Source: Lepidodermella squamata
Taxonomy: Eukaryota > Animalia > Gastrotricha
Reading direction: 5' to 3'
Length of the DNA stretch: 64,000 nucleotides
Assembly: GCA_047495785.1 (NCBI GenBank)
Contig: JBLDXI010000017.1
Location: forward strand, 930,001 to 994,000
The stretch's first letter is position 1; every line of letters begins with the position of its first letter. The position numbers were made by a program, and so were the translations under genes. The notes below the pieces were generated by a model. That model was not told the DNA's origin and did not search any database. It saw only the letters and a program-made list of their open reading frames with translations. This document shows, one piece after another, positions 21,014 to 49,192 of this stretch.

Positions 21014-21937
21014 GGTACAATACTACAATTTCCCAAACTATGGTTTCTTTCGAGTATTTCCTATAGGATCTGAATTGTTTGTATTATTCTGCTTGACCGG
21101 TGGATCTAACTATTAAGCGTATTTTGCGCCATCTGTAGTCAGTTTACCAGCCTTCATAGCTGATATCGATTTCTGGTATCGGCTTTAGAAATCAGTGATT
21201 TTTCCGATATCCGCGATCTTGGATGCCAACATTTTGGAAATGTTTCCAACTACACGCTGACTTCAACATTCGGGGTCACTTTTAAATGGAGCGATTTTGG
21301 CATAGCAAATCTCCAAGTTAGCAAGGCAAAGGTACTTCGAGTGGGATACCATTGAGCTTTCCATTGAGTCATCAAAATTCTGCCGAAAATCGAAATTTTC
21401 CCCAAAAGTTGTCCGGCCTGTAATATCAGGTAATGAAACGGGTCGATAATTTTTATTGTAGGCATCTAGGTTCTCTGCGTCGCAGGTTTTCGAACGGTAA
21501 TACCCCACTCAAGGGGTTTGGTGCCAGGATACAGGTCCAGTAATGGAACTTTAATTTTCCGAATCCACTCGAATCGATTTTTTTCCGGTTCGTTTCCGCC
21601 TCTTACAGGTGATTGGGTCGAAATTAATGATTATTTCACAACATGCAGTTGATAAGCTTCTCAAGTTTATTACGAAATTCAGCAAATTTTTTGCAAAAAA
21701 GGTCAAGGCAATTACAAAGGTAGCTCAAATAAATACAGAAAAAATGGATGAATTAAACCAAAAAAGGATAATGAAATTTATAAGAAATAACAGTCTATCA
21801 TTTATTTTTCTAATAAAATAAAAAATAAATCGGAGTGCTGTAGCATTATATACTCACCGCTAAATCGAGATCTATTTTAGTTATACACAGCTTCTCTATC
21901 ACCGATTTTTTTGTCGTAATAAAATAAAAATAATGTC

Positions 21938-24900
21938 TCAAAACTCAACTCCATCCGTTGCCATTATTTCGTTTAGCATAGGTAGAATAACAAAAAGTGT
22001 TAGCGGTATGATGAGGTTCCACACCCCATTCACGTACATGATGCTTTTGTCCAGCGCAACGCAATAGACCAACCACCGATGTTTGAAGTCCTTATTACCC
22101 TGATCGTCCTCATTCTGATTGTGGCGCTCGGTGTTCCGCCTATTAGTATCCCGGCGTTGATTCCGCGTCGGCGAACCACCACTGTCTTCGCCATTCGTGC
22201 AACACGACGACTCAAGTTTCCGCCAAATTTCCGACCCATCCTTTTGCGAGACCGTGTAGGCCCGCGGCCGCGGCTCCTCGCCGTCACCCGTGCTCAATCG
22301 GGGTGAAGGTCGCGAAATTAACGGCGCTGGGATATTACCAGCCGGCGTGTTCTCCGAATCTTCGCTTTCATCCACCGAAAGGGGCGCGGTATTCCGCTGC
22401 CGGATGCAGTGTTGGATCGACATGTACTGCGTCGACTGGCCGCCGCCGTAGCTGCTAACTTTACGCACCAGTTCGCGAGGTAGCACGAGTTTAGGATCAT
22501 CGAAATGCGGCTTCACATAAACTTCGCGCAGAGTCTTAAATAATTACAAAAAAATAACCATTAATTCACGGAAAGAATCCGATTTTTTTTATACACAAGA
22601 AAGAGCCTTTTGACTATTAAATCTATTGAAAGGACAAGTTTACAGTAATTCAGAAAGCTGAAAAATCACGGTAAAACGAATTCTCACATTCTCATCATCT
22701 CCATCATCATCCTTGAATTATCGAAAATTACCGGAATTTCAGTATTTTTTTAAGAAATTTTAAACGAACCTGAACTTTGACATTCGGCCGGTCGGCGTCA
22801 AAGTCCTTAATCTCAACCTTGGTGTGATTTTTGATATCGCCATTATTGGGACAATGCTTCGAATGACCTGTCCCGTTGATTTGGCCGTTTTTCGTTCGCA
22901 GCATGTTAACCGACGGTGACGGCTTTACTACCTCACCCTTCCCGTCCAAGATCCAAGTCCCGGGCACCGAGTTATTTATATCAGGGCTCGCCAAGCCTCT
23001 GCTGTGGCTAAGCGATGGAGTTAATGTTTTGCCGTTTCCATTTGGCGTCTTATGATGACGGCCAGGTTCGGTGGTTATCAACAATTCACCGCTGTTATGC
23101 GACGAACGGGCGACTGAGGACGAAGTTCCGAGTTGTTCAGCCGTAATAGCTCGCTCGTAGCAGTCTTTCGTGTAATTTCGTAACAGCTGGTCTTTCGCCA
23201 TTCGATCGACCTGGTTACGCGACCGGTTGCGCTTTGAGCTTGGGAAACAACCAGTCCCTTCACGGCCGACTTTATCCGGCCAAACAATGCTGAAGAACGA
23301 TGCAAACATTGCTAAAATCGTTGGCTCCTTATTCGGATACCTATTAATATGCCACGAATTTGACTAAAATATTAGGGTGGCTATTTGTTAATTACCGTAA
23401 TACTGTGTAGAGCATAACAAAGGAGTTAATGAGGGCGAAAACCAGGTTGATGCTGACGATGGCCATGTAAATTTGGAGCAGCGACATTGAGTCGGACGAT
23501 TTTGGTATGTGAGCCGCAATTCCTGAATATTCACAAAAATTAGAATAAATTATGTAAAAAATCTGACTGTGTTTTTTTAATTGGCTCCCATCACGTTAAA
23601 GACCTTATTCCTTATAAGCGACTTCCTAATTGGGATTAGGACAATTGGGAACATTTTCACTACTAAAATTGGTGGTGTCGGAGGCTTCTAGAGAATTTGT
23701 TTTTAATTTGGTTTCCGATCACTGATTTGTAAAATCGATATATTTTTTCTTTCCCAACTGTTTTTATTCCGTTTTCGCTAAACTTCCTGAGATTTTAGCT
23801 GAATAAGTTCATATTCAGGCATTTATAGTAGCAAATGATCTTTTATACAAATTATTTAGATTATTTTACGCCACTCCGCTTTGTCAATTCTATAGTCAAT
23901 CGATTTCTCGTTATGCGATTGCCCTCAAGATTGCCTACAAATAGCTCGGACAGGGCTGATAAGTTCTTCCAGGATTTAATGGATGTAAATGGTGGCAAAA
24001 TTTATGCAAATCCTTCTGCGGACCCAATTCCATCATATAACATAACATCTCCGAGGAATACTGATAAAATCGCGCGATTTCTCATGTTTTCCAGTAAAAT
24101 TGCCTACCTGAGTGAGTTACAGAGGCGCCGATGAAAAGGGCTGTTAACATGGTCATACGGCCAGGGTGTTCAACCGGCAGCGTGTGGCTCAGCGTCTGCA
24201 GCAGGGCTAGCATGAGTTCAGGGAAAATGAAGTACATGAAGTAGAAAGCGCTTTTGCGTCGCAGTGAGAACACGAAAGTGATGCATGAAAAATTTTTGCC
24301 GTCGTAGTCGACCTTTTCGGGCAGCGCCCGGTAGCCGAGAATTGTCCAGTGCAAGTTGACGTAGTACTCTTTAATATCGACCGCTTCTTCGCCTGGGTAC
24401 AAATCAATCTCGAGATACTGAGACGGGTAGATCCACGACTCGAAGCGGACCTCGCAGTTTTGACGATCGAATGGGAAATAGGAGATGATTACATTACAAC
24501 GGGTGACAAGGCGACCCGATGGGAAATATCCAACCCCGCCGTCTGATGTCAGATCAACATTTGTCACTTTCCGAGTTAATGAATGCGGCTCGGGAGAATT
24601 GACTATGGCCTAAAATAAAAATAAGTACATTTTAAAAAATTTTAATTTAATTTTCAAAATTTCAAAAAGACTCACGATATCAGGTAGCCAGATTTTATCG
24701 CTGGAAATGGCCATCCAGGTGATGTTGCCGAAGCGTTGCGGGTCCCAGGCCAAAAATTCATCGACCCAGATCATTTTGACGCATGAGGCCATAATCATAA
24801 CTTGGTCACGCTCGATTAAATCTTCAATCATCATCACACACATTCCAACCTAAAATTAGGAAATTATTCCAAGAAAATTCTAGCCAGCTTCAGCCAACTA

Positions 24901-29480: not shown

Positions 29481-32400
29481 TCATGCCTGGTACGGCTTGT
29501 AATTGCCTTGCGACATGAAAAATAGCTCATTTACGACAGGCACCAGGGTGAACAGAATTACTGGAACAACAATGTTGAGCGTGCCAGCAAAATACCTGAA
29601 TAAAAAATTGGAAAAAATTGAAAAATTAAATTAAAAAAAAAACGAACATAATAATTTTATCAAGCGCGACGCAGTAAATGAGCCATTTTCGCTTCAAATC
29701 TTGCGCCTCGTTCTCAGCCGCCTGCATGCTACGCCGGTGTTCGCTTTTCGCTGTTTTCATTGAACTTTTGTTAGGAAGAAGGGGCTTTTCCGGCGGTGGT
29801 GATGGCGCTGATGCTTGCGGCGCGAAGGCAGACCGGCTGACTGTCGAACTCGTCCGCCGGCGCCGCATCGGATTCGCGTTTTCCGACTGCAAATCCGACG
29901 TCTCTTCACGGTCGTCCGACTCGTTGCCGCTCGACATAATCGCGATTCGGTGATTGCTGTTCGAAGGGCTATGACCGTTTTTCGGCGTTAAACTCGACGC
30001 ACCCCGCGGCGGCAGGGGCGGCGACCCGGGTGCTTGGTGCCGGGAGGGTGATCGCTGCGGTTCGTTGAGGCTGCGCTGTTTTGACATGTAGCCTATAGTT
30101 GATCCGCAGACGTCCCAATTCGCGATGTTCATCCGCGCGGCAGGCCCGCGGTTGCTGAATACCGACGCGTTTGGCGCGAAGGTCGATTGCACATTTATCT
30201 GAAAGAAATCAATCATATATAAGCAATTTATGAGGGACAATTTGGTACTAAATATTGGAACAACAAAATTTGAGGTTCCAGCACTAAATTATAAAATTCT
30301 ACCACAACATGTTTTCGCTCTTTTGCAATTTAGACTTTTTCCTTTTTTGATCGATGACTTGATCGATGATTTTTTAGATAACTGGCACCCCAAGTTGAAG
30401 GGGAAACCCCAATATTGAGTGTCTATACTCTATACAGACATCAGAAAAATCATTGATTTGTAAAATCAATATCGGAAATCGGTTTCAGTTCTGCAAATGG
30501 ATTGTTAATCGTAAACCGACTGCCAATGGCGCAAAATACGCGCAATATTAGAAAATATAGTAAAAAGAGAATTATATGGAACCGTAACAACCATATTTTG
30601 AGGAAATTTCGTGCTGTTACCCTGAACTTCTAGCGTGCGCAATTGAGACAATTATTCTTAATTATTGCTGATTTTTCAGACTTTTCAATATCCACTTCTG
30701 GCAGATCAGCTTTTCCCAAATAAATAAATATTTAAAATGTATTTTACATTACTTTTTCATGCCTCGGGCGCGCCCCGTTCGGCGCAAGGCCATTTAGAGG
30801 CTAAGATGACTGTCCAAAGACCCAAAAAATGAATTTAAGCTTACGATACGAAACGAAACCTTATTCCCATCGCTCATCATCATCCAGCGAATGAACCTAG
30901 TCGACATTAAAGGTTGATGAGCAAGAAATGAGTACAAAGCTTCATTTGCTTACTCAAAAATACTTTGAGCTTCGCACTCACAAGGCGAAGATGGAAAAAT
31001 GCCCTAGAAATTGTACAACAATCGTGTTGACATGTACAAATTGAGAATAAAAAAATGAACACATTAACCAAGAAATCGCACATCACGTTCTTCACCTTCG
31101 AAGAATATGACCAACTTTTTTGAAATTAGACTTAAAATCCAGGTAAGTCGAAATTACAAAAATATTGCTAAATTATAAGAAATTTTAACGCATACGTTTA
31201 TCGTTAGATTTCACCTCGCAGGCGCCAAAACCGCGTAGAGGCCAAGTTAGCTCAAGGTTCAAAATTAAAGGTTTGCGGCGAATGCACATCGCATCGCTGG
31301 ACAAGGGTACTGAAACTCGTTTACGACATTTGCCGCAATTACGAATAAATAAGAAAAATTTACCTGTATCCCACGCGCAATCATCGGGGTCTTAATTTGC
31401 ATATTCTATTTTTAGCCTCTATAACTAAAACAGGTAAAAAGCAGGTGAGATGTTATCTTCTTGAAAAATAATGTCATTAGTAAATGAAAAATATTGAGGC
31501 TAGAAGAAACCTCGGAATAATTGAAATGTTTCAGACACGACAGGATGTCTGGCAACCTTATTTCGCCTGTCAGCAGATAAGGGCGGCAACAATGATTAAG
31601 TAATCAAAATTCACTCGAAAGCTCGACAGCGACAATAATTGTCCGAAATATTTTTTTACATTTAACAGGAATATTTGGACAAATTGAATTTCTCGTTCGT
31701 TAATTGAATATCAAGTTCGAATAATGTTCTATCAATTCCTAATTGTTCAGGCCCGTAAAATTGTTGAGAGATGTCTAAATATTGACCTAGTAATTAAAGC
31801 CTTCAACTAGTGTCTACAAGCTTCAATTAACTTGTCTGTTTTTCGTCCACATTATCCAAACACTTATTGTAGGCGTGCAAGCGATGAGGTATATCAACGA
31901 GAAATCAAGGCGATTTCAGTTCAGTATTCACCTGAATATTACAACATAGCATCAAACAAATTTTTCAAAAAATGACTAGTTCTTGGTTTAAAAAGCTGGC
32001 TGAGTGCCTCATCGAGTTGGAGGTTCGCTACAAAACTCGCCATTCGCCGCCGGTCAAGCGCAGTAGGCGGTGTACCGAGCCTGGAGTTTTCTACTATGGA
32101 TCGAAGCCTAATAGGGGTCCAATCGGTTCTCCGCATATTCGTCGGCGCCACTTGACGGCATAAACCTGCTCTTATAGACATTGGCATTATAAAAATTCGC
32201 TGCAATTATTTTCCATGAAATAAATTATTTGCAAGCCTTGAAAACTTGTTGATTTTCTTTACAAGAAATCGTCGCAACAAACGATGAGATCAGATGCTGA
32301 TCAGCTGATTTTTTTCTTCAAATAAGTTTGAAGTGCCTAGTTTTCAAGGTCCCCTCAAGGTTCCCGAACTCATGATTAATCTCATGATTATCTCTCTCGG

Positions 32401-35400
32401 GTAAGACTGGTTTTAGTCGCTTAAATTTCGAGGAGTTCCATTGGACTCATAAGGCTTCATTTTAATGAAAACTCCCCGCGAGGACTGACGTAATGTAAAA
32501 AATTGAAATCTATGGACGATTGAAGCTGGACAAATGTTCCAGCGGGGTCTATTGCCTTGAAAAAGATCGAGTCATGTCTTAAGCTATGACCTGAATTAAT
32601 TCTCTCTAGATTTCTAGATCTAAAATTTCTAAATTTTCGACGTCTGGGATACTCCAATGCTGTAAACTATTCTTTTTGGATATTATGTAGCAAGATTCCT
32701 CGAAACGGCTAAAAGCGTGGGAAAAATATAATATACCTGAAGTTAAGTGATGAAAAAAAATTAAAATGCACGCACTTCCTGAAGCAAATATTTTTGGCGT
32801 AGTACGCACCCTAAATTCAGGGTTCCAGCTGTAAGACTCCAGCACTAGATTTCCTTAGATATATTTTTTCGAGCTTCATGTCTTCTCTAGAATCTCAATT
32901 TTTATGTTGTCATGCCTAACCTATAGATCTTCATTTTACGCGTATTTTACGCTATCAGTGGTCAGTTTATGAGTTATACTTCAGCCTGCAGAGCCGATAT
33001 CGATTCCAAGTATCGATTTTACAAATCAGTGATTTTTCCGATATCAGCCGTCGTGAAACCTAACATCGATAATTTTTCTACGTAGCTTAGGGCTCCAGGT
33101 AGCTAAAACAAAAAAATCCTAGGTTCAGGGAGGGCATCGCTATCGATGAGAAAATGAAAAAGCCGAAATCGCAAAAAAATATGAAAAATTTAGCGCTGGA
33201 ACCTTGGTTTTAGTGGTGCAAATATTTCTTGATTTCAGATGTTGCCAAAACCCAATTTTCACCTGTTTGCGGTCATTTTCTTCATTATCTGATTCTATTG
33301 TATTAATTTTTACTGGGTCTTACTTTTAGCGGAACACCAAATTTTGCGAATTTTTAATGGGCCCAACACCAATTTTCGGAACTTTCAAGGATGTCATGAT
33401 TGACCAGCATAATTCCCAGTAAATAACCTTCAAATTAAGCGTGAAATTCTGTATAAGACGCATTCTTTACATCAGAATTCATACATTGCCTCAAATTCGT
33501 ATTATTATTCGAGAATCGACCTCAGGTTCAAGTCTCGAATTAGGTTCCGCTAAAATATATTCTGTTTTTCGTTGATGGCTCGTCGCCCATTCTCCAAAAC
33601 CTTCTCGCAATTGAATTTTTCGCAGAAGCAAGTCCCCATTTCCTATAAAAAAAACAAGCTTATCCGTGATTTTTCGGATGAATGCTATTACACGGATAAC
33701 ATCTGAAATTATAACGCGTGTTCGATCAAATCCTTCGAAGCGCAGCATAAATTGATCAGCGAGGAATAGGAGCATTTACTCGCCTGATCAAAGTCGACGC
33801 CCCATCCCGCCAAACCCGCGGAACTAACTGATGTGACCACGATTTACAGACTATAACGTATCCGTGTCCACAATCAAGGGTAGAAACTACTCATAATATC
33901 AAACCGTGTCTCATTTTTTCATGTTCTTGGTCATTTAATTATGAGTCATAAATTGGAACTTTAAACAAAGATGACCGTTTTATAGTATACTGTTTCCCCG
34001 TCAGTTGGTAAGATAAATGGTCAAACATCAGCCGAATTTTGCCGAAAATAGACGTCACAATAGTATTGAGACTAACTGAATTAAAAAAGACATTGCGAGA
34101 TAATTCAAGCTGGCCGTGAGCCCCGGCCTCGGAATTTTCGGGAAAGAAACTTGGTCGAATCTTAATTAAAAGGGTGCGTGGCCTTTCAGTTTTTAATTAA
34201 CGCCAATTTCGTCTTAATTACCCCTTGGACATCCTCCTCATTTATAGCTCTAGTATAAATAGGAGATGCGCATAATTCGATTTCGCATTTGTAAACATAT
34301 CATCGAAAATCATGCCTTATAGACCGTGGTTTCAAAAGCTGGTGGAGTGCCTCATCGAACTCGAGGTGCGATACAAAACGCGAAGCCGTACGAGTCAACT
34401 CTCGAGAATCCCACTTTCTCACCGTAAAACCAATTTGAAACGTCAACATTGTTAATAAAATTTCCATTTTTTTGAATAATTTTGGTTTTTTTCGAAACAT
34501 GTTCACCGCTCAACTTAGGGTTCCAGGCTGGATTTTCTGATTTTTCCGATATATCGATGAGCCCCATTTGCCGTAATTTTTCATTTCGGATATCTGGTGG
34601 AGGGAAATCGTTCTATTTCCTAGGCTGCTGATATCGAAAATCACTGATTTGTAAATTCGATATCGGAAATCGATATCGGCGATATCTGAAATATAGATCC
34701 TAAACAGACCGCAGATATCGCAAACTACGCGTAAACTCCTGTCCCATAAGTAACTAAAAAAAACGAAATACACGGAAATGGGGTCAGAAACTCTAAAACG
34801 TGAGGGGAAGTCATATCTGATGGCGAGAGAAATCTTAGAAAAGTAGAAATGGGTATAAAAAATTCCGTATAAATTTGATCCAACCAGGTAAAAACCGAAA
34901 ATTACCGAAAAAGTTACCATCGGAGTTTTCAGGGATATCTTCATTTCTTTGGTAAAGTTCTGGATAAAGGATGGAAGATTCCCCAAGTGGGTTTGATTTC
35001 AAAACTTAGTTTAAATTATAAAAACTTCGAAATTCTAAAATTACGCTGTAGTGAGATCTATTTGTTATTTGTTAGACCAGATAAAACTTGAAATTTAACG
35101 CTGGAATTCTATTATCGATTTTTCAATGTTAAACTGAATTCTTACCTCGACATCATTCGGGTTTTTTAACCGAACCGTGACCGGATATTGGTCGACAACC
35201 GCTCCGTTGTTTTTCGCCCGTGCCAGCGGGCTGCCGGTCGGTGTGCCGATCAAACTGCGACTCGCTGCTGGGAACCCGTTGAAATTCACCGAATTTACGC
35301 TACTCGGCAAATGGCCGTTCTGCTTCGTATGCTGGTCACACTTGAGAGCATCGACGCTCGATGGGAAGTGCGTAAATTGGCGCAGGTAGTGCGTTAGCGA

Positions 35401-37709
35401 GCCATCGGGCAGTTCACGTATAATAGGCTGGTCGCTGGATGGCGAGTCGTTCTTGTTATTATTCTTCAAATTAGGCCATACAACACTGAAGAAGGCGAGC
35501 ATCATCGTTTTGAACGATGGATCGGAATTAGGGTATCGCAGGACGGTGTACAACATGAGAAATGTGATAAGGAGGCTGAATACCAACTGCACGCTCATTA
35601 TTGTCATGTAGACTTGAAGTAGGGATAGTGTATCTGACGACTAAAATAAAAAGAGAAATATTACAAAATAAATTGGAAAAATTCCAGGTTGCAAACAGAC
35701 CTTGGGAATATGAGCAGCGACGCCTGAAAAAATAGAAAATTGGTAAAATTAGAATAATTACGAGGGGTAAACGTGTTTTTCGAAGATTAAAAATTCTCAA
35801 GAAATTCTGAAATTTAAACCAGAGATGGAACAGGTGATTCTTGATTTTCCTACAAATTTTGGAAATTTTTGCAATTTTTCCTGATTTTTGGCAAATTAAT
35901 TGGCTATAGACAGTTATAAGCTTATTTCAGACCCTCTTTTGCATATGCATATTCAAGATTGACCTTGGCAAATAGGTGCAATTAATTAAGAACACATTTT
36001 TCAACTCTTGGCCTAATAATTATTTTTTTCTCCAGTCCAAAATTAGTCCCTTACACCTGAATCGTCCAAGGCTATTCTGTCAAAAATTTCCTGCGCATTT
36101 CGGTAAACCTAAATATTTCCTAAGAAAAATACCTGCATGAGTGACGGAGGTTCCAATGAAAAGAGCCGTTAACATGGTCATACGGCCAGGGTGTTCAACC
36201 GGCAGCGTGTGGCTCAGCGTTTGCAGGCAGGCGAGTAGCAGCTCGGGGAAAATGAAGTACAAACTGAAGTAGAGGCTTTTCCGCCGAAAAATGAAAGTTA
36301 TCGTTATGCTCGAAAAATTCTGCCCATCGTATCCAACTATTTCGCTTTGAATGCGATGGCCTTTGATATTCCACTGTAAAAATATTGAAAATAATTATTA
36401 AAAAAAATTCATATTTTTATTTCCTTTTGTCATCAACATTTTCGAAAGCCAAAATATATCTTTAGGACAGTTTTTACCCAGGCATTTTTCAATATATACA
36501 TTTCCCCCCAGAATCCAGGATAAGATAAATAATTACCCTAAAATATTTTGCTATTTATTTTGGTTGTTAGAAGCTATAATTAGGTTATTCAAATGGACAA
36601 TTTTTTACCAATTCCTATATTGGAGCTCTTGTTTTCAGAGCAAACATTAGACTAGATTATTATTATTTTTAGACCTAGTATCAAATGTCTTGGCTAAATA
36701 ATTGAGGACGCTATAAAAATAAACTGAGTTAATAAGCAAAAAATTATTTATACCTGGTAATTTGCATAATGCTCCTTAACATCGATAGTATCATCGCCTG
36801 GGTACAAGTCCAATTCCAAGTACTGGGTCGGATAAATCCAGGACTCGAAGCGAACATCGCACTGCTGCCAATCGAAAGGAAAAAATGTGATAACCAAATT
36901 GCACCTGGTAAAGAGGCGGCCGGAGGGAAAATAACCCATCTATTGCATAAAAAAATCAGAAAAAAAATTAGAAAAAAATGCAAAATAAAACTGACCTCTC
37001 CTCTGTAACTCAAGCCAACATTGGTAACTTTTCGAGTTAAAGCAGCTGGATCAGGGCTATTGACAATAACAATATCTGGAAACCAGACTTGCTGGTTTGA
37101 AACTGCAATCCACTAGTAATTGAGGAAAAAATCTTAAATATCATCGAATACTTTTTGCGAAAAAATTACAGTAAGATTGCTGTATTTTTTAGGATCCCAT
37201 TGAAGTCGCGGGTCGTCCCATAGCATTTTCGCGCAAGCGGCCATGATCATCATTTGATCACGCTCGATCAAATCCTCAACCATCATAACGCACATGCCAA
37301 CTGAAAAAATTGCAAAAATTATTAAAAAAATGCATGGTTACTATGGACGCTACTCACCCTTAACAACCACAGGTGAGTTAGGCTCTCGAGCCGGTCGAAC
37401 ATTTTTCATGTAACCGCGGCCGAATAAGTATTTGTAGAGTTTTTCCTCAGGTGAGGGTACAGCTTGGCCGTCAATAATTTCGCCGTCTTTCGGGGGTTTT
37501 TCTTCCCGACTACTCGATGGCAGAAAGTAGTCTTCCTTCGGCAGGCCGTCATCGTCGCCCTCTCCTACTCCGTCAGGAGACCGAAGCATTGACGACCGCC
37601 GATCTTCGCTGCTGATATCGTCATCGTGATCGCTGAGATCGGCTCGTATGGCGATTTTTAAGGTGGATGAAATCAAAATGAGGGTGAAAAATCGCAGCAA
37701 GAGCACCAT
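29481..37709 (-). CDS. Cys-loop ligand-gated ion channel subunit 3 (same clade), 9 exons, ~4.9 kb intron in the M3-M4 loop
   Basis: Signal peptide, YMKNVRPA, CNLVITFFPFDWQQC, ESWIY, LPVEHPGR, DLKRKWLIYCVALDK, last exon YFAGTLNIVVPVILF...YQA* ending 29481. Confidence 0.9.
31972..32163 (+). CDS. Nested antisense micropeptide copy 1 (63 aa, MTSSWFKKLAECLIELEVRYKTR...)
   Basis: Core IELEVRYKTR identical to copies 2/3 although 6 of 10 codons differ synonymously; lies in intron of channel 3. Confidence 0.7.
   Translation: MTSSWFKKLAECLIELEVRYKTRHSPPVKRSRRCTEPGVFYYGSKPNRGPIGSPHIRRRHLTA
32806..33219 (-). mobile_element. Most complete copy of an old ~400-bp dispersed MITE-like family (core AAAATCACTGATTTGTAAAATCGATACTTGGAATCGATATC)
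   Basis: Imperfect TIRs GCACC(A)CTAAA...GGTTCCAGC; degenerate cores also at ~14511, 21165, 23718, 30445, 34630, 41741, 43262, 45212, 47146. Confidence 0.75.
33668..33787 (+). pseudogene. Decayed coding-like segment upstream of micropeptide copy 2
   Basis: DFSDECYYTDNI*...IKSFEAQHKLISEE*EHLLA*, homologous to 42458-42577. Confidence 0.4.
34254..34261 (+). promoter_or_regulatory. TATA box of micropeptide copy 2
   Basis: TATAAATA with an Inr-like GCATT about 30 nt downstream; same spacing to ATG as in copy 3. Confidence 0.6.
34312..34455 (+). CDS. Nested antisense micropeptide copy 2 (47 aa, MPYRPWFQKLVECLIELEVRYKTRSRTSQLSRIPLSHRKTNLKRQHC)
   Basis: TATAAATA 58 nt upstream of ATG, AATAAA overlapping the stop; same length as copy 3. 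Confidence 0.72.
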   Translation: MPYRPWFQKLVECLIELEVRYKTRSRTSQLSRIPLSHRKTNLKRQHC

Positions 37710-39350
37710 TTTTTCCTGAAGTAAAAAAAATGTGAACGAGGAATTTTCGAGAACAATACAAAAATAGCAATTTTTTTAGTAAGAAGCCATAAAAGCAACA
37801 AATTTCCGTCACGAGTCTCCTAAATTCCGCCATGTCGGGTTTTCAAAGGCTACATAAAACTACATCTCGAATTGCAAGTAAGGGACAAACCTGGATATCG
37901 GCAAATCACCGGATTCGCATGATTTTCCAAATGTAAAAATAAATTGCTGAAGCTAAAAACTAGTTGAGAAAAAACCGATATTACGATGCGGATTCAATCT
38001 GTACGGTGTTCTAGATATTGCGGGAAAAATTAATCCTATAAATTAATCTAATATAGGTATGGATTATTCATCGCCATATATATTTATAAAACTCGTCGCT
38101 GTTTATACAAAGTATTTATCATGGGAAAATACCTAAAATCATCATTCATTGGGCTCTTATGCCAAGTATGGCGAAGCAATTGATGGTGAGGTGTCTGTAT
38201 ATTACGGATATAATCCAAGCGGGGGTAATTCGAGTCGTTTATAACAGCGCTATATAAGAGGAGGAATCATGTTGATCATTGTAAATGATGGCGGCTATTT
38301 ATCAACCCGAACCAATATTGCGCGCGCATCCGCGCACTTTTTAGATATGTTTGCGTATCATGTGCACGCCGCCAATTTTGCGCTTTATTGCTCTGCTATA
38401 CTATAATAATGGCCTAAATAGAGACGTGACCCCGAAAAAAGGACCTGAGATATTATAGCTGTTCGGCATGTAAAAAAACCGCGCGCGATTCATGAACGGT
38501 GTTAACAGACACATTTGGTATGTTAAGAAAATCAATCTAACAACGCTACCTTATAATAATAATAACATCGTCAAAACTGGTTATTCGGTATTCTTCATCC
38601 CACCCTGAGAAAAAATTGGGGTTGCTAGGCTTTTATGCTCTTCAAGTGGGTAAATCCTGACCTATAATTTGGCGGCACTTATTGAAAAAACGTCACTGCC
38701 TGTCACTCAAACTTATTGCGTGAAAAGCTTGGTAGACTTTTTTTTCTGTCGCAGAGAGTAAAAAGAAAGATGAACCAGATTCAAGTGCGATTGGGTGTAA
38801 TCGAGTTAGTCTCACGAAACGGAATAATCAGCGAGCGGCAGTTGATTCATTTTTTTACAGGTTTTTACGATGGCTGAAAAACTATATAATATCAGCGCGG
38901 TAAGCTACGGCGGTCACATGAAAAAAACTCGTCGACAGTTATTTATTTAAAATATATTGCGCCTGGACTAAGTGGGGAAATACCGCCGAGTTTGGTGTCC
39001 CCCAATATAACACAAAAATAAGATAATAAACGGCAACACTATAGGAAAGGCGTAATACAATATATAAATTTGCATGAGTGGAAATTGCATTGCGGGCGAA
39101 ATTCAATTCAGCCGAATAAAGTACGTGGAGTTATAGCCGAAATCTGTGTACAAAAACCGCTCAAAGTTAGGCCAATTTTTCGCGGCAGTCATTTTTGGCA
39201 CGTCGGAGGCCTCAAACCACGGGCCAAAATAATTCGGCTCTGATATGAGAGAACAATGGAACATATTTCCCTCTACAAAAATTGGAAAATTTGTGGAATT
39301 TCTATACAGAGACCAGACTATATTAATTGGCACAAAAATGTTATTTTTTC

Positions 39351-39790
39351 ACGTCGTTGAGCTCAACGGACCATTTCTTGGCGGACCACACTTATTACCC
39401 CTTATATCCTAGTCATGGATACCATCGAAGTGTGCCACTTGAGTGCCAAGTGCGGCAAGGTGTGGCGCATCTAATGAGACCAATTATGACCCAAATTAGC
39501 ATTCCATCTTAATAGGGGGCTGCTTTAAACAGAGCGGTCCGCCAAACCAGGGTCCGCTGAGCTCCAAAAACCCCGGCTTTGTTGAACTCGGCGGACCCAA
39601 TTTAGCGGACCAAATCAAGTTGTAGTACTGGGATGTTTGCAACCGCCAGAGTGAGGCTAAATAGCTCAGGTGTGCATAGTAGGTCATTGGATGGCACTTT
39701 TCATGGGGAATCGACTAATCATATGGCACACCTCCGACCTAGTCCGAAACACTGGTCCGCTAAAATTTGGTCCGCTGAACTCAGCGACGT
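39351..39790. mobile_element. MITE with 9-bp TSD (Mutator/MULE-like), 440 bp
   Basis: Imperfect 23-bp TIR ACGTCG(T/C)TGAG(C/T)TCA(A/G)CGGACCA, TSD TATTTTTTC both sides, internal GCGGACC/GGTCCGC repeats. Confidence 0.75.
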
Positions 39791-41321
39791 TATTTTTTCC
39801 TAATTTTTGGGTTTTCTTGGGCATGGTTAATTTTATCGGAAATCTGGATAAATAGCCATAAAACTATGCCCATTTTTTATGTAGAAGGCTTGAAGGTTAG
39901 AAGTAAAAGCTTGACATTTTTCAATGTCGCGAAACACCTCATTAAATTGATGCGCACTCTAATAAATGAACTACGCCCCCTGTGGATTTTTCTGGCCACC
40001 CTGTATTAGTAGAACGCGGAGAACTTGATTAAACAAAATTATTTAAAACGACACTATCTAATATTTCGCGGTTGATGCCAAGTATATAAGGAGACGGAGA
40101 AAACCTGGATAAATCTTAAGGTGGCGTCGTTCTCAATATCTCGAGAGCTGCATCCCGAAAGTGCACTCAAAAATGACAATAGAGAAGTGGTAACCCCATC
40201 AGAAAGGTTGCTTTGAGAGTCTTTCAAAGGCAAAAATAACGCAAAAATAACTACCTAAAAATGCCCTAGTTTTTTAGGATAATCTGGAGAATTTACGGGA
40301 GAAAATAGGCTTTGCAATGCTTATACCTAAAAAAACCATTTGCGGCTTTGAATTAATTGATATTTACCTTAAAAGAGCCGAGTCCAAAAGCGGTCTGTTG
40401 TTTCAGAAAACAAAATAGGTATTGCGCATCGGTCAAACGCAGTTTTTATCAACAATCATCATTCATTTTTCATCGAATCGCATCGCTTGCGAAATGTTAT
40501 ACAGATAGGTACGCCAGGAAATATATGTGGGTCATGATTTATTTTATACAAGAGATTATCATATTAAGCGAAAACATTTTGCGACGTAATAAGCGAAAAA
40601 ATAATAATAAATTATACTATATATAAGAGTGCATCGCGCTTCCTTTCGCTTGCGATCAAGCATTTCGGACACCCGGCCGCGCTTCTCTATATCATCCTAT
40701 CATAATCAATCATTGTTGTTCGATGCTGTTCATATAATACACAGTCGGACATCGTATTGGCTGTTTACTTTTTTGTCGATCGTATATAATTGCAGGAAAC
40801 AGCGTCAGATCGCACAACCGCCACAACTTCCCGGGACGATCCTACTATACTGTACTCTGGCTATTTTTTCTTTCAATGCAAATATTTGAATCAGCTGCAA
40901 TAATATAGCTCTTTGCATGTTAATGGGTCCCATTTTTCAACGCGTTAGGAATCGAGCCAAAAAATAATGCGGCAAATAAATATTTTTAAATATTATTCCT
41001 GGAACAAAGTAGACAAATATTTAAACTTTAGCTTCGAGCCTTTTATTCGAGCCATCAAACAATAAATTTCTTTCCCTCGAACACCACATCAAAAGTTTGA
41101 TAGAGAATGAGCGGAAAAATAAATGAAATTAAATGAGTACAAAAATGATAGAAAAAATATAAATAAACAGAAAAGACACCGCTCGCAGACGGAAAATATT
41201 TTATATATAGGTGACGTGTTATTCTGAATAAATTGAATTGATCGCTTCGCACACCTTTCGACTCGTTGATTCATGGTTGGGTTGAGTTGAGAATAGATTA
41301 TTTTTACAATATTGCATTAGA

Positions 41322-44300
41322 TCACCGCGCCGGGCCCTTGATTGTCGCGATGTCCGGCGATAGCATCAGTTCGTGAAGGTAGGGAACAACGAAGAAAAGC
41401 GCAATCGGAACGGTCACATTCCATATAAAATTTGCATACCTGAAATAAAAATTAAATAAATTATCAAGTTGGAATATATAATGTAAAATCCAGTTTTCCC
41501 GAAAAAATCGACATTTTGAAGAAAAATAACCAAGAATTACAACAAAAATGTGGAATTCTAATGCTATAAATGTTCAAGAAATAAAATTTTTTGAAGGTGT
41601 CTGAAAATTAGCACCAGCCACCAGCAATGAATCTTCCAGTTTTTTTCTATCTTGATCAATAAGTGCTTCAATTTTAATTACCTGACACCTTCAGGTACGT
41701 AAAAATTTCCAAATTTTAGCTTCCTATAGAAGCTTCCTATAAAAATCACAGATTCGTAAAATCGATACTTGGAATCGATATCATCTCTCCAGGTTGAAGT
41801 ATATCTCGAAAACTGACCGCTGATATAGCATAAAATATGCATATCAATGAGATCTATCGGGTCCTCAAAATCTCAGCCCCTGAAATGCTTCAGCTAATAT
41901 TTCGATCCGAAAAACGATATGCCCAGACGGCGAAAATGCAGGTGAACCGCAAGGTAAACGACGCCACTCGAAGCTAATTGCCGAAACCAATATGGCTGTA
42001 ACAAACGGCAACAAAATAACGCGCCCTCTACGTGAACTTGAAATTTAGGGTCCCCTACGAAGTAAAAGGCTTCAAAGAAAGTATGACGCAACAAATGGTG
42101 CGCACTCCAGACAAATGGCTTCAAAGCAATCCCACTAAAAAAGTACAATAAAGTATTTCGCAATGGTCAGCATGTTTTGGAATTAATGTTATTATTTGAC
42201 TCTGAAGCAATTCTTTTATTTTGCTTTGAGGTCATGGTGCTTTGAAGCTTTTGTTTTGAAGCCTTTTACTAAATTTTCCCTACTTTGTAGGGGACCCGAA
42301 ATTTACGTTCATCTGCCTGCTCTACCTGGCCTGGAAATGCCGGATTTGGCGAGGAGATTGCTCTCAAACCTATCAAAAGATTACTTCTCCGGCTAAATTT
42401 CCCACGTCACGCCATTGGGTATTCTGCGATTTCCAAAAAAAAATATCAACATTTTCAGAATTGTTTCCAGATGACTGCTATTGCATGGACGTGGAAAGCT
42501 TTTAATAACGGATGTTCAAATCTCTTCAAGCGCAGAAAAAGACGATCATCGAGGAATTGGAACATGCACGTGACTGACCAGCCTGGCCATCCTGACATCT
42601 CGAAACTATCAAAATTTGCCCACGATTTTCGCAGTCTTGTCCAAATTGAATATTATATATAAACTTTATAACATATTGTCCTCAATTTTCGTCACAAGGC
42701 CATGTGCAGTCCTTGAGATTCACATCTTTGCAATATATTTATCAGAAATTGGAACTCATTTTGTCAATAAGGATAATCTCACGCACGAGCTGGACTCCGA
42801 CAATATTTATGAAATCAGGTCGAATCTTAATTAAGCGGGTGCGACCTCAAGACCTAAATAATTAATGCCACTTTCGTCCTAACTACGTCCCAGTGGACGT
42901 CCTTCATCCTTCTTTATAGCTCAAGTATAAATAGAAGATGCGCATAATTCGATTTCGCAGTTGTAAGAATATCATCGCAAATCATGCCTTACAGACCTTG
43001 GTTTCAAAAGCTGGTGGAATGCTGCATCGAACTCGAGGTGCGATACAAAACGCGAAGCCTTTCAGCTCAACTCGCGAGAATTCGACTTCCAAACCGCAAA
43101 ATCAACCCGACCCATCACATTTGTTAATAAAAATGACACGTTCTTATTTCTGAAGAATTTTGGTTTCCAGAACTATAAAATAGGCCTTTGCATTTTTATT
43201 TTAGCTACCTGTTAGCCCAAGGTATGAAGGCTAATTTTCAATAGTGGCTTATCTGAATGCTGATATCGCAAAAATCACTGATTTGTGAAATCGATATCGG
43301 AAATTGATATCGATCTGGAGTCTGGAGGCTAATAATAGTGAGATCCATCGGTTAGGCACGATAATCAAAATCAAAGAGAGAAATCCATATTTTTGAGACA
43401 TTTGGAGCTAGAACCCTGGACTTGGAGCGTGCACTTGGGGTCTTTTTTTCTCGGAATTGTTCTGATTTTTTAAGGGTTTTTTTATCGTCTTGCAAATCAA
43501 ATTTTCGCCGATAAATAACTACGTTTCTAAATGTATTTTAAATTAGTTTTGTCACGCCTCGTAGCATAATAAATAAATCCATTGATGAGAATAAAAAATG
43601 AGATTTAAAGAGCAACTAGGACCTCGAAAAAACCATGAAATATTTTAGAAAAATTACCGTATTTACTTGAATAAAGGCCGCGGCGATTATTTTCCTAATT
43701 TTTCAGAAAAGGTAAAAAAACGCGGCGATTAATCGAGTGCGGTCTTTATTCGCGTGCGGCCTTTATTTTCCTCTCTTAGCCAAAAAACGATTTTTTTCAA
43801 ATGTAACTTGCCTATTTCGTTATTGTCACTCAATTTCGATTTCATCTTCTTCGTTTGGATCGGTCTCGGCGTCATTTTTCGCATTTTCAAAAAATATTTG
43901 AAAATTGAAAAAAATAATTAAACATTTTCACTTCTCGCGATGATGCTGTGCCGCGCGTGTTAGAGCTGCGCTGATTAATCGCGTGCGGCCTTTATTTCGA
44001 TTGTTTTTTTTTAAATAACACAATTTTGCGGCGATTATTCGCGTGCGGCATTAATTCGGAATGCGGCCTTTATTCAAGTAAATACGGTAAATGCTAGAGA
44101 CCTAAATTTCTAACATGTGTATGTTGAAAACACGAAAAAAAATTGAAATAATATTTGAAAAAATTGAATTTTTCCCTGGAACTTACATAATGCTCTTGTC
44201 CAAAGCAACGCAGTAAATAAGCCATCGGCGTTTCAAATCGTGCTCATCGTTAGAATGATGAAAGCTCATACTGCTACGCCTCGCCAATTCCTTACGCTTG

Positions 44301-47300
44301 TTACTCGGACTCGTATCCCCGCCATCCGTCTTGTTATTGTCATCCGCCACCGCAAGGCCACTCGGCCGCCGGTACCTGATGTGAACACCGGGCACGTCGT
44401 TACAGGTCATCGACTGCTCAACTTCGTCAAGTTGCGGCGGCGCTTTGTGGCCGTTGTGATTGTGATTGTGAGGCACGTGGTTTGATTTTTGAGTCGATTC
44501 GTTGCTGATTCGCGGCGCTCCGTTGCATTGATGGCTGTGTATAGCCGGCGTGGTTTCGTCGACCAGGCAACGCTGCGCTGACATGTACTGGAAGTTGTTA
44601 TCGCCGCAGTTGTTCGATGACGAGCCGCCAGTGCTCGAGCGACGGCTTGAATAGCCGTTAGCGTGATAGTTGGGAAATACTGAGTAGCCATCCTTTAGCA
44701 AAAAAATTAAAAATACAATTAACTCGAGCCATATTTTTCATCATTTTTTCATCAACGAAAATTCAGGTTGACGCATTTCATAGCAAGCAAAAATAACCGG
44801 AAAATGCGGAAAAATTGAAAAATTCCGTCATTTCGAAGAATTTAAAAATTTTGAATTAAATTAACCATTTTTATCGAAATTCGCTAATTTTTTCTAGCTG
44901 TTTAGAATGAGATTGAGCTACTACGCATTGGTACCAATTTTGCAAAGCCATCGATCAGTTAAATTTAGGACTGATAGCAATAGCATTTATTTCAAGAAAA
45001 GGCTCATTTGTCATTTCGAGAACGTGACTTCTGGGTCCGAATATTTGTACCATTTAAATTGAAATTTTTGCACTAAATTTTGCAAATTTTGCGACTTCTG
45101 TACTTGACCGATAACAATCCACCTTGTCACCCTGGGATTTCTTATTCTAGCTACATTGTACCCTCAAGTATGTAGAGAAATATAAATGTTTAGGTTCTAG
45201 GATGGTCAAAATCGGAAAAATCACTGATTTGTAAAATCGATACATGGAATCGATATCTGATCCGTAGGCTGAATTAAAGCTCGTAAACTGACCCCAATAG
45301 AGCGAAATACGCGTAATATCCATCGTTTAGGCCTAGTGATAAAAAACTGAGATCGAAGGGAAACTAGTTTCAAAGCCTCAAACTTAGCGTTGGAACCCTA
45401 TTTTCGGGTTGTCCATTTGCAAAATCCCGCAAATTTTTGAGCAAACATTCGAAAATATCGCAATCTTGCGGGTTCATGCTTTCAATTTTGAGGGCCAAAA
45501 TAAACTCGAGCGAAAAATATAACTGAACCAAATGGTATGAAATTGTTTTTCATGCAAAGAATTCAACCAAATTAATAAAACAGTTTAAATTGGAAAAATG
45601 ACAAAATCTGACGGGGTAATTATTCTTAATAAAACGTCAATTTGAAGACGCTTTTTCAATTTTCCAAAATTTCAAATTTGGCAAATGAATTTTGTTCGCG
45701 AGTTAAAAATTAAAAAACTTATTGGGTTAAAACATTAAAAACAAAAAGTAGGTAGGGAATGGGTAGGTTATTTTTTTAATTTGTACGGTGTTTGTATAGC
45801 TTTGAACGCTGCCAATGTTGTAACAATCGGCTAATTTCGCGGCAAATTCCGTCGAGGCGTTAATATCACCGCACGAGGCCACCGTCTCGAGCGTGGACGG
45901 GTCACTTACAATAGGCGAATTTCGAATCAGCATCTCGTAACACGTGCCGCTAACAGCACTGCCATTGCCAGCCAGCAACGCATGGGCCAGGTGGCTGGAC
46001 GACGACAGCGGGATACCACCATTCGGCACTGAATTTTGATGAATTTTAGAATTGTGATTCTTCGCGTAATTCGCCGGATCTACGGCTGTTGTAGTGCTAA
46101 ATGGACCGTGGCCGTTAGCCATGACTTTTTTAGAGTGGTCACAGTTGCGTTTGTCCTCGCAACACGGGGTGATAGGCATCTCCTCGGATGATGATTCTTG
46201 TTCACTCATCGATTGGTTGCTTCGATTCAGGTACAAATCGGACAGATCCCTCGCAATCGCCCGATGGCCTCCGTTCATTGCATGTGATTCCTGTTTTAAT
46301 TTCTTGATCTTCTTCGAATTTTTGTGGCACTTATCGCCATCGCCTGTTAGCGCGAGCAGGAATTGATGCCGGTCTTTTCGGTAATCTTTGAACTGCTTTT
46401 GCCGCGCGCGGCAACTTTTGCTAGGCTTAGGCGGCCAGACGATGCTGAAGAAGGCGATCATCATCTCGGAGAAACACGGCTCGGCATTTGGGTAGCGAAG
46501 GACGGTGTAGAGCATGACGAAAGTCACGAGCAGAGCGATAACTGTGACGGAAGAAAAACATTTTATTACAGATACTTTGAAAAATTCTCCTAAAAGCTTC
46601 GATTTTTTTTCGTTTTTTCGACAGTAAATTTCAAAATTTTAAACGGGAATTCTGAAGATTCGTTTCTCGAGTTTATTCTTAATTTCGAACAAATTGCAAC
46701 CCCATTAAAATTTGATTTTGAAATTGGTGCTTCATAGATAATATATAAAACAGAAAATATGGGATTAAATAAGACTTTTTCGGAACCAAATTGGAACCAA
46801 GCTTGGCGCCGAGCTAAAAATCCGCGAACCATTTTTTCTGTCATATTTGGAAAATAAGACTAAATCGGCGTATTATGAAATTATGAAAGGCAAGATTATT
46901 GCGCGTAAATCAATTGCATTCTGAATTATTGGAAATTCGAAAAGCTTCACAAAACAATCACCACTAAAAATGTTGTAGCGATTAATTCAGGTGCTACATT
47001 TTACTGTTTTAACTCGATATCAATTTTGTCCTTTCTTGGCTTTGATAATATGATGCACCCAATGATGCTAAGATTTTTTATTTTAGCTACGTAGTTAACC
47101 CCAGCCAAGTAGAAAACAGTTTCTTAGTCAGCTTCCAAGATTTCAGATATCCGAAAATCACTGATTTGTAGAATCGATAACACAAATCGATATCGGCTCA
47201 GCAGGGCTCAAGTATAACTCGATAACTGACCGTTCATAGCGCAAACTACGCGTAATAGAGAGATCTCTCCTTCAGTTATAATTCGAAATTGATGAGATTT

Positions 47301-49192
47301 CAAGTAAGAAATTCAACTCGAAAAACCATATTTTAGGGAAATCTCGCGCTGGAGCTGGTATCTTCATTTGAAAAAGTCAGTTTTGGACTTTCAAGATTTC
47401 CGCCCACCTTTATCGTTTTATGATATTTCAATGTCTTAACAGCTAATTACACTAAACTGCATATAGCAGCAGCCTTCATGTCATTGCACTACTTTCTTTA
47501 TGCAAGCTCAACAAATTTCACAAATTAAATTCAGATTCGCCTGAATTTTTCTATAATCTAGCGAGAGTAGAAAATCTGTATGTGGTACATGGTAAGTATA
47601 GCTCTGGGATAAGGACGAAATTTGAATAAGTAATTCATTTTCCATGCAGGAAGCAGGATGATGACTCACATTGCACCAGGGTGCAAAAGGTGTCAATTTA
47701 CAACACTCTATAAAATTGCTTGCGGTGGTCACCAGAATCTGCCCTGAGTTCACCCGAAAAAATCATTAAAAATCTTACCTAAATTAATGCTCATAATCGA
47801 CATGTAGACTTGAAGCAGCGACATGGTATCACTCGATTTCGGGATATGCGACGCTATGCCGGCATGTGTGACAGTTGTACCGATGAAAAGCGCCGTTAAC
47901 ATGGTCATACGGCCAGGGTGTTCAACCGGCAGCGTATGGCTCAGCGTCTGCAGCAGGGCGAGAAGCAGTTCAGGAAAGATGAAGTACATAAAGTAGAACG
48001 CCGGCTTGCGGCGAAGTGTAAACGTGAATGTGATCGATGAAAAGTTTTTCCCGTCGTAATCAACAACTTCAGGCTTAATTTCATAGCCTTTTATCGTCCA
48101 TTGGAAATTGACGTAGTACTCCTTAAGATCGACAGCTTCATCGCCGGGGTACAGGTGAATTTCTAGGTATTTTGTAGGATAGATCCAAGATTCGAATCTA
48201 ACCTCACAATGTTGCCAATCAAACTGTAGAAAAATTTGTTATAAAAATTCCGCCTTAATAATTTTTGAAAATTACTGGAAAATAGGTGATAACTAAATTG
48301 CATCGGGTTGCTAATCGACCGGATGGGAAATATCCAACTTCGCCTCGATAGTTCAGATCTAAATTGGTCAATTTTCGAGTCAAGGAGTGAGGCTCAGGAG
48401 AATTCACAATAGCCTGAAAAAAATTTGAAAAAATTAAAAAATAATCAATTTATTTTCATTAATTATTACGATATCAGGCAGCCAAATTTTATCGCTAGAA
48501 ATAGCCATCCACTATAGAAAAAATCGATTGATTAATCAATTTTTTTACGCCACTAGTCATTACTTACCGTGACGTTGTCGTAGAGGGTAGGATCCCATTT
48601 TAGGTACTCGTCGACCCACGACATTTTAACGCATGATGCCATTATCATAATTTGATCACGCTCGATTAAGTCTTCGATCATCATTACGCACATGCCAACT
48701 AAAAATAATAAAACATCGAAAAATAGGTCACATTTTGCAATGTAGGTCACCTTTTACTACAATCGGCTGTGAGTGATTTCTGACCGGGCGGACGTGTTTT
48801 AAATATCTCCGGCCTAACAGTCGTTGGTAAAGCGCCTGTTCGGCCGAATTTGCCACCAAATCGTTCTCATCGGCCTCCATCCAATGGCGCGATATGTCGC
48901 TTTTTCGAACGAATTTATTCCCGGCGACGCCAGAAATTGTCCCTGGTACTTGCCTGCGGGCGAGTGCCTCTCGCCTCCGTTGACTTTCGTAGTAATCCAC
49001 GGCCTCCTCGGCAGTGTCGAATGACAAATATTGCGCACTGCCGTAATTATTGGAGTCTCGATTCAACGTTGACGTGAAATCGTCCTCGCTATTTGCGATT
49101 TCGATCAGAAGCGATAAAGCGATGAGAATTTTGAATAAATTAAGGCGGCGCTTCTCTCCGCGATGCCTTTCTTCAAAGTATAACATAGCCAT
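41322..49192 (-). CDS. Cys-loop ligand-gated ion channel subunit 4 (same clade), 8 exons
   Basis: YLKHVRPV, CNLVITYFPFDWQHC, ESWIY, LPVEHPGR, DLKRRWLIYCVALDK, last exon YANFIWNVTVPIALFFVVPYL...PAR* ending 41322. Confidence 0.9.
42458..42577 (+). pseudogene. Decayed coding-like segment upstream of micropeptide copy 3
   Basis: ELFPDDCYCMDVESF**RMFKSLQAQKKTIIEELEHARD*, homologous to 33668-33787. Confidence 0.4.
42926..42933 (+). promoter_or_regulatory. TATA box of micropeptide copy 3
   Basis: TATAAATA with an Inr-like GCAGT about 30 nt downstream; spacing conserved with copy 2. Confidence 0.6.
42984..43127 (+). CDS. Nested antisense micropeptide copy 3 (47 aa, MPYRPWFQKLVECCIELEVRYKTRSLSAQLARIRLPNRKINPTHHIC)
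   Basis: TATAAATA 58 nt upstream, AATAAA overlapping the stop; synonymous differences to copy 2 (TAT/TAC, CCG/CCT, GAG/GAA); lies in last intron of channel 4. Confidence 0.72.
   Translation: MPYRPWFQKLVECCIELEVRYKTRSLSAQLARIRLPNRKINPTHHIC
43657..44087. mobile_element. Tc1/mariner-pogo-type MITE (431 bp)
   Basis: Perfect 25-bp TIR CCGTATTTACTTGAATAAAGGCCGC, TA on both flanks, internal GTGCGGCCTTTATT repeats. Confidence 0.88.
46960..47355 (+). repeat. Degenerate copy of the ~400-bp MITE-like family in an intron of channel 4
   Basis: CACCACTAAAA start, AAAATCACTGATTTGTAGAATCGATA core, AACTGACCG..AGCGCAAACTACGCGTAA, GCTGGAGC end. Confidence 0.6.

Follow-up and report, generated by a model that had tools for sequence, protein, structure and literature searches.

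The 64,000-nt stretch of the gastrotrich Lepidodermella squamata considered here (contig JBLDXI010000017.1 of assembly GCA_047495785.1, positions 930,001 to 994,000 of the forward strand), referred to below as the window, carries on its minus strand four tandem genes of Cys-loop channels: unit 1 at 13.5–16.7 kb, unit 2 at 21.9–25.1 kb, unit 3 at 29.5–37.7 kb and unit 4 at 41.3–49.3 kb. Antisense to units 3 and 4 lie three short open reading frames (ORFs), named mp1, mp2 and mp3 for copies 1, 2 and 3, which an initial annotation had proposed to be members of a family of micropeptide genes nested in the channel introns. All three are on the plus strand: mp1 at 31972–32163 (63 aa; core codons 31984–32040), mp2 at 34312–34455 (47 aa; core codons 34327–34383) and mp3 at 42984–43127 (47 aa; core codons 42999–43055). 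Direct reading bears out these coordinates and lengths as well as the common core of 19 residues, WF(K/Q)KL(A/V)EC(L/C)IELEVRYKTR, and the alignment of the three products contains 19 invariant columns. Each ORF is intact, with its ATG present and neither an internal stop nor a frameshift, and at 63, 47 and 47 codons each falls within the size limit of a micropeptide gene (ATG-initiated, intact, fewer than 100 codons). The ATG stands in frame four to five codons upstream of the core in all copies, the ATG-to-core distance differing by exactly 3 nt. No fourth copy was found in the window by tblastn and blastn at permissive settings.

The placement of mp1 and mp2 within an intron is confirmed by RNA. 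In a contig of RNA run X1 the match to unit 3 stops at 35142 and continues with the letters at 30173–30194, joining 35146 to 30198; together with the splice sites GAG/GTAAGA and TTTCAG/ATAAATG this junction defines a minus-strand intron of 4,947 nt (30199–35145, GTAAGA...TTTCAG) that contains both ORFs. In unit 4 the MA exon ends with AT/GTAAGT at 44186/44185, and the M4 exon (SIMYANFIWNVTVPIALFFVVPYLHEL..., a close match to unit 1) extends from 41440 to 41322 after TTTCAG, so mp3 probably lies within the 2,745-nt last intron (41441–44185, minus strand), as judged by homology to unit 1. The proposed antisense nesting thus holds firmly for copies 1 and 2, and by homology of the M4 exon for copy 3. 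The copies occupy non-homologous positions in units 3 and 4, and units 1 and 2 contain none.

Substitution pattern in the core and in the tail

The part of mp1 that can be aligned with mp2 and mp3 is limited to 56–63 nt, with no alignment of the surroundings; homology confined to the core, with the neighbouring sequence diverged beyond recognition, is what is expected if the core alone is constrained. Over the 19 core codons mp1 and mp2 differ by seven synonymous and three non-synonymous changes (pS 0.58, pN 0.07, omega 0.064), and mp1 and mp3 by eight synonymous and five non-synonymous changes (omega 0.069). Within the core the decapeptide IELEVRYKTR is identical in mp1 and mp2 in spite of silent changes in 6 of its 10 codons, the codons having been quoted correctly in the initial annotation. 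When the same number of substitutions was placed at random in 10,000 trials, with the fewness of replacement changes as the statistic, p was 3e-4 for mp1 versus mp2 and 4.5e-4 for mp1 versus mp3. The remaining five frames of the mp1/mp2 core present the opposite pattern, with 4–9 non-synonymous versus 1–5 synonymous differences, and p is about 2e-3 once six frames are allowed for. The frame-specific excess of silent changes in the core is therefore real and goes beyond chance. A minus-strand alternative exon of the channel was rejected as the source of the similarity, the open antisense frame having nine replacement changes versus one silent change.

The younger pair, mp2 and mp3, is embedded in a duplicated segment of about 340 nt (34153–34488 and 42818–43166, both on the plus strand) with 78% identity overall. 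Along this segment the identity is 71–73% in the upstream flank (gapped), 91% from the TATA-type motif to the ATG, 93% in the first 24 codons and 69% in the last 24 codons (all three without gaps), and 61% in the 3' flank (gapped). The ORF, 141 nt in the comparison, has no indels, while similarly diverged flanks have 4–11 gap columns per segment, and its length is unchanged at a divergence of about 19% overall and 31% in the tail. Conservation is highest from the TATA-type motif through the core and at the block composed of the terminal Cys codon, the stop and AATAAA, a perfectly conserved island of 12 nt. The equal length and common stop of copies 2 and 3, as first described, were recovered: the frame, the 47 residues and the terminal Cys are kept while the flanks are gapped. 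Omega for this pair is 0.16 in the N-terminal half and 0.74 in the tail, the latter indistinguishable from neutral, and because of this difference the helix-forming region is considered the constrained one. In the tail, residues change almost freely while frame and length are kept. The purifying selection proposed for the peptides as a whole accordingly applies to the core, where omega is 0.06–0.07 and the signal is frame-specific, and not to the nearly neutral tail.

The same comparisons bear on the alternative that the conserved sequence is a functional non-coding element, either in DNA (an intronic regulatory site, for instance) or in RNA (for instance a small RNA), on which the ORFs and the codon pattern are coincidental. 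Such an element would account for the untranslated TATA-to-ATG interval being as conserved as the core in mp2 and mp3 (91% versus 93%), and chance ORFs of 47–63 codons are common here, with 113 ORFs of at least 30 aa in 11.5 kb. Against it stand the frame-specificity of the substitutions, at the p values given above, and the 3-nt offset of the ATG combined with an indel-free ORF, neither of which it would lead one to expect. Moreover, no Rfam match was found at E up to 1 over 31000–44000, and folding compared with shuffled sequences gave z of +0.2 to +1.4 on both strands, that is, no stability signal. A structured RNA was therefore rejected as an account of the conservation, and a non-coding element in general is regarded as improbable.

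A second haplotype is present in the DNA run and differs by up to about 15% in short intronic patches at 31809–31897, 32769–32829 and 33234–33370; just upstream of mp1 the two haplotypes are separated by 13 substitutions and two indels in 90 nt. Across mp1 itself the 350 nt at 31898–32247 are represented by one contig for both haplotypes, with no differences, which is weak support for constraint because heterozygosity is patchy.

Flanking signals, copy number and expression

Both younger copies are provided with promoter-like and poly(A)-like motifs at corresponding positions. The TATA-type motif TATAAATA is found at 34254–34261 for mp2 and at 42926–42933 for mp3, its first letter exactly 58 nt upstream of the ATG in each case, and AATAAA overlaps the stop at 34454–34459 and 43126–43131, all on the plus strand and as the initial annotation had reported. 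Some 33 nt downstream of the first T of TATAAATA comes an initiator-like CATT (34286–34289, mp2) or CAGT (42958–42961, mp3) on the same strand, which predicts a leader of 25 nt within a transcript about 190 nt long; an upstream ATG of mp2 at 34266 falls before the predicted start of transcription. The weaker TATA-like motif and the TCAGT noted earlier for copy 1 are also in place: a plus-strand stretch at 31890–31925, whose motifs are read directly and whose promoter function is putative, consists of TATATCAA at 31890–31897 and a tandem, initiator-like TCAGT at 31916–31925, 28–33 nt from TATATCAA. The AATAAA of mp1 lies 56 nt past its stop (32219–32224, plus strand). Since TATAAA occurs 0.7 times and AATAAA 1.4 times per kb per strand, a single occurrence of either is weak evidence; that both are retained in mp2 and mp3 although the flanks have diverged is a stronger point than their presence. 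The possibility that the ORFs are initial exons of larger, spliced genes was rejected, as no conserved GT donor follows the core and mp3 has none before its stop.

By depth of DNA run X2 the family is of low copy number. Depth is about 100 on mp1 and about 190 on mp2, the latter comprising mp2 and cross-mapped mp3, compared with a baseline of about 90, and an additional X2 contig on mp2 carries the letters of mp3; this corresponds to one or two copies per genome at identity of at least 90%. Repeats resembling miniature inverted-repeat transposable elements (MITEs) that adjoin mp1 and mp2 reach depths of 10^3–10^4. The view that the copies are not a dispersed repeat is thus upheld, with one or two copies set against about 10^4 for the neighbouring MITEs. 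Neither inverted nor long terminal repeats bracket the units; only weak inverted matches of 14–24 nt occur, and none of them encloses the homologous unit in both copies. A transposable element or transposase fragment was rejected on the grounds of low copy number, the lack of terminal inverted repeats (TIRs) and long terminal repeats (LTRs), and the lack of any match to a protein of transposable elements or viruses; the core has no transposase match in Pfam, the PDB, the large protein collections or viral contigs.

Expression could be followed in RNA run X1, the only run indexed for the locus. It covers the host channel exons at a depth of 10–40, correctly spliced, and includes the joined exons 36191–36373, 36754–36939 and 36996–37112. 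Depth is 0 over 31200–32599, with mp1, and over 34000–34599, with mp2. This is weak negative evidence, because the run is small and available as contigs only (118 Mb), which show presence and cannot prove absence, and because an mRNA of about 190 nt may drop out of standard library preparation. Codon usage was scored with a model trained on 5,802 codons of the window: compared with 100 non-coding ATG-initiated ORFs of 40–80 aa, the log-odds of mp1, mp3 and mp2 fall at the 91st, 88th and 69th percentiles, respectively, and all are lower than the median score of genuine coding chunks, a result that favours coding but is suggestive only.

Two side observations concern the transcripts of this region. 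RNA contigs cover 33600–33999, a single-copy part of the intron between mp1 and mp2, at a depth of 1.5–5, which could represent pre-mRNA or an unannotated transcript; a minus-strand ORF of 94 aa lies at 33491–33775. Acceptor-like TTTCAG or TTCAG stands immediately before the candidate starts examined for units 3 and 4 (37700–37725 and 49190–49210, minus strand), or up to about 25 nt ahead of them, a pattern compatible with trans-splicing of a spliced leader or with a first exon left untranslated.

Counterpart array in a relative and origin of the copies

A relative of the window species is represented by environmental metagenome contigs (L005, L006 and L009), with a PDPR protein 75% identical to that of the window and channel exons 66–95% identical. 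Its four channel genes, a–d, are collinear with units 4–1 and occupy about 11 kb (5869–16686 of L005) compared with 36 kb in the window (13500–49300). As judged from called ORFs, b3 of the relative is uninterrupted across the position of the unit 3 host intron, a3 extends at least 8 residues past the corresponding position of unit 4, and d2 is a single, uninterrupted ORF where a gap in unit 1 breaks the coding stretch for the loop. The peptide core is not detectable in the relative's array (tblastn with word size 2, best E = 0.7). A weak antisense match within a 75-aa ORF of the relative (E = 2.8) was rejected, as this ORF is not among the called genes of the sister contigs. Synonymous sites are saturated between the two species (pS 0.86–0.89), so the split between mp1 and mp2 (pS about 0.58–0.68) is probably younger than the speciation. 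The peptide family is specific to the lineage, and nothing about function can be read from its absence in the relative.

The MITE-like repeat AAAATCACTGATTTGTAAAATCGATA..., about 110–190 nt long, is found mostly in channel-gene introns, its depth of 10^3–10^4 contrasting with the baseline of about 90. In the window it occupies 14504–14549, 21111–21208, 23718–23743, 30440–30548, 32933–33123, 34637–34734, 41741–41818, 43265–43324, 45131–45319 and 47154–47257. These repeats, together with the uninterrupted b3 and d2, raise the possibility of lineage-specific gain or expansion of introns by introner-like elements (for comparison, bioRxiv 10.1101/2022.06.06.494994). With pS above 0.75 between the window species and its relative, codon usage may have shifted.

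The relative also bears on a functional relation between the peptides and the channels. It might be supposed that the peptides are partners of the host channels, as binders of the MA helix or as a toxin/antidote-like pair, and that their nesting was selected for co-regulation. What speaks for this is co-location only, all copies being intronic to units 3 and 4 and oriented alike. In the relative the four-gene array does without the peptides, and its called ORFs b3 and a3 read through the positions of the unit 3 and unit 4 host introns, a3 for at least 8 residues more; units 1 and 2 carry no copy, the positions in units 3 and 4 are non-homologous, and in run X1 no co-expression is seen where the channel is expressed. 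This makes such partners highly improbable. Very little credence is likewise given to a young co-located regulator, whose helix would be kept by selection and which would have been born or amplified in new or expanded introns and act on the host channels or their expression. A functional link of the peptides with the channel or with a kinase is unsupported, and the location within channel genes is most simply explained by local duplication into expanding introns, of which it would be a side effect.

The chief rival to an active family is that the three copies are dead relics, whole or 5' fragments, of a once-coding gene or a low-copy mobile sequence; the silent pattern would then be a trace of selection that once acted on active source copies, and those now present would be neither expressed nor constrained. 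The zero RNA coverage of mp1 and mp2, the near-neutral tail of mp2 versus mp3, the location of the copies in lineage-specific intron DNA crowded with MITEs of very high copy number, and their absence from the orthologous array of the relative are all as it would predict. It fits poorly with the intactness of all three ORFs and with the length of mp2 and mp3 being kept, free of indels, through about 19% divergence next to gapped flanks. Nor does it account for the promoter-like and stop/poly(A) blocks being the best-conserved parts; by depth there are one or two copies without TIR or LTR features, and a source protein was found in no database searched. The relic reading is considered rather unlikely.

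The reading preferred here, in which about even confidence is placed, is that mp1–mp3 constitute a real lineage-restricted family of small ORFs with a helix under purifying selection and a fast-evolving basic tail. Several results weigh against it. The family amounts to three local copies and the selection signal to 19 codons (57 nt) picked post hoc, the tail behaves as nearly neutral, and the similarity of the mp1 tail to those of mp2 and mp3 is not significant (p 0.39–0.48); to these are added the zero RNA depth on mp1 and mp2, and the uninterrupted b3 and extended a3 of a relative in whose array the core went undetected. Homology searches were equally unrewarding: mp2 has no homologue among 5.8 billion proteins (26–82 aa, word-indexed search), a profile of the three peptides run against 1.84 billion representatives was blank, hmmscan against Pfam-A returned no match with E up to 10, no homologue was found among PDB sequences, the ESM Atlas and viral contigs, and the Atlas "recognition" value is low (1446–1676). 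Exact-product look-ups of mp1 and mp2 were also blank. That the peptide is not a recognised one, as had been stated from the outset, agrees with the lack of a known protein match in any collection searched. For the PDPR protein of the window the large collections give a best match of 75% identity; as the window PDPR itself was not returned, the collections probably lack this genome, and the blanks are silent on paralogues elsewhere in it. Among named proteins, those of nemerteans, molluscs and annelids match this neighbouring PDPR gene best, at about 40% identity. The sole metagenome match to the peptides, on L001, was dismissed as chance: this is a GC-rich bacterial contig, where a 341-aa enzyme-like ORF contains PWFQKLVE, the search pattern itself.

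Predicted product and relation to known systems

AlphaFold2, given the three-sequence alignment, predicts a single helix over residues 5–28 and a disordered tail, with mean pLDDT of 86–95 over residues 1–20 and 65 over residues 21–30; the check proposed for the core thus returned a helix. The helix had also been described as amphipathic, a property that is not established, because its hydrophobic moment is unremarkable and no higher than that of its own shuffles (p about 0.25). The peptides are very basic (pI 9.9–10.7) and strongly hydrophilic (GRAVY –0.45 to –0.89), with neither a signal peptide nor a membrane segment. K and R make up 14 of 63, 11 of 47 and 9 of 47 residues in mp1, mp2 and mp3, i.e., 19–23%. 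In protamine-like proteins about one residue in two, or more, is Arg or Lys, and a protamine-like sperm nuclear basic protein was rejected on this count. Each tail opens with a motif of the RxxS/T type (RRCT, RSRTS and RSLS), to be treated as a lead only.

If the family is active, mp1–mp3 would be tiny intronless genes, duplicated locally inside the long, repeat-rich channel introns, each driven by its own TATA-type promoter and yielding predicted transcripts that, before addition of poly(A), measure about 190 nt for mp2 and mp3 and about 320 nt for mp1 and would then be translated. The product would comprise an alpha-helix some 24 residues long at the N-terminus, with a selected core in which W, F, C and Y are invariant and E, R and K form a pattern, followed by a disordered, fast-evolving tail rich in Ser, Thr, Arg and Lys. 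The helix may serve as a docking or self-association module. The cationic tail could bind nucleic acid, or else an acidic partner, non-specifically by electrostatic attraction; alternatively it could offer a site of the basophilic-kinase type, RxxS/T, right after the helix. Provided that they are expressed, mp1–mp3 would be micropeptide genes that have escaped annotation and are restricted to a taxon, with one short helix as the sole recognisable conserved part; they would illustrate how genes may hide below ORF cut-offs and arise and duplicate in lineage-specific intron DNA. No general principle would be changed, intron-nested orphan small ORFs being already a known category.

Among known systems, the small ORFs of Drosophila detected by ribosome profiling (PMC9622821) share with mp1–mp3 a length below 100 codons, a single exon and a size below annotation cut-offs, as well as restriction to a taxon and selection detectable on a short segment only. 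In contrast to them, mp1–mp3 are known from sequence alone and without a sequence relative, and they lie off any recognised long non-coding RNA, with a TATA-type promoter-like signal of their own. De novo and orphan genes (reviewed in PMC12051474) likewise have no homologue outside the lineage, are short, basic and largely disordered, and reside in sequence missing from the orthologous locus of a relative. The present family differs in consisting of three paralogues with a conserved core, the oldest split having dS above 1, and any descent from non-coding DNA is conjectural; to judge from these features it appears more constrained than typical very young de novo ORFs.

Comparison can be extended to other small proteins. 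The protein kinase inhibitor PKI is a small peptide of the heat-stable type in which an N-terminal helix is followed by a basic, Arg-containing stretch. The resemblance to PKI (PF02827) is one of design only, a helix and then a basic stretch with the tail motifs given above, whereas no Pfam match was obtained and no membership is claimed. Sarcolamban, phospholamban and myoregulin, which belong to a class of regulatory transmembrane micropeptides with hydrophobic membrane helices, are in the same size range and also consist of a single helix; unlike them, the mp core has 8 charged residues out of 19 in a strongly hydrophilic protein. Finally, genes nested on the opposite strand within host introns are common in animal genomes, and mp1–mp3 resemble them in being antisense, contained in an intron and provided with promoter and poly(A) signals of their own, here candidate ones, the only difference being their small size.

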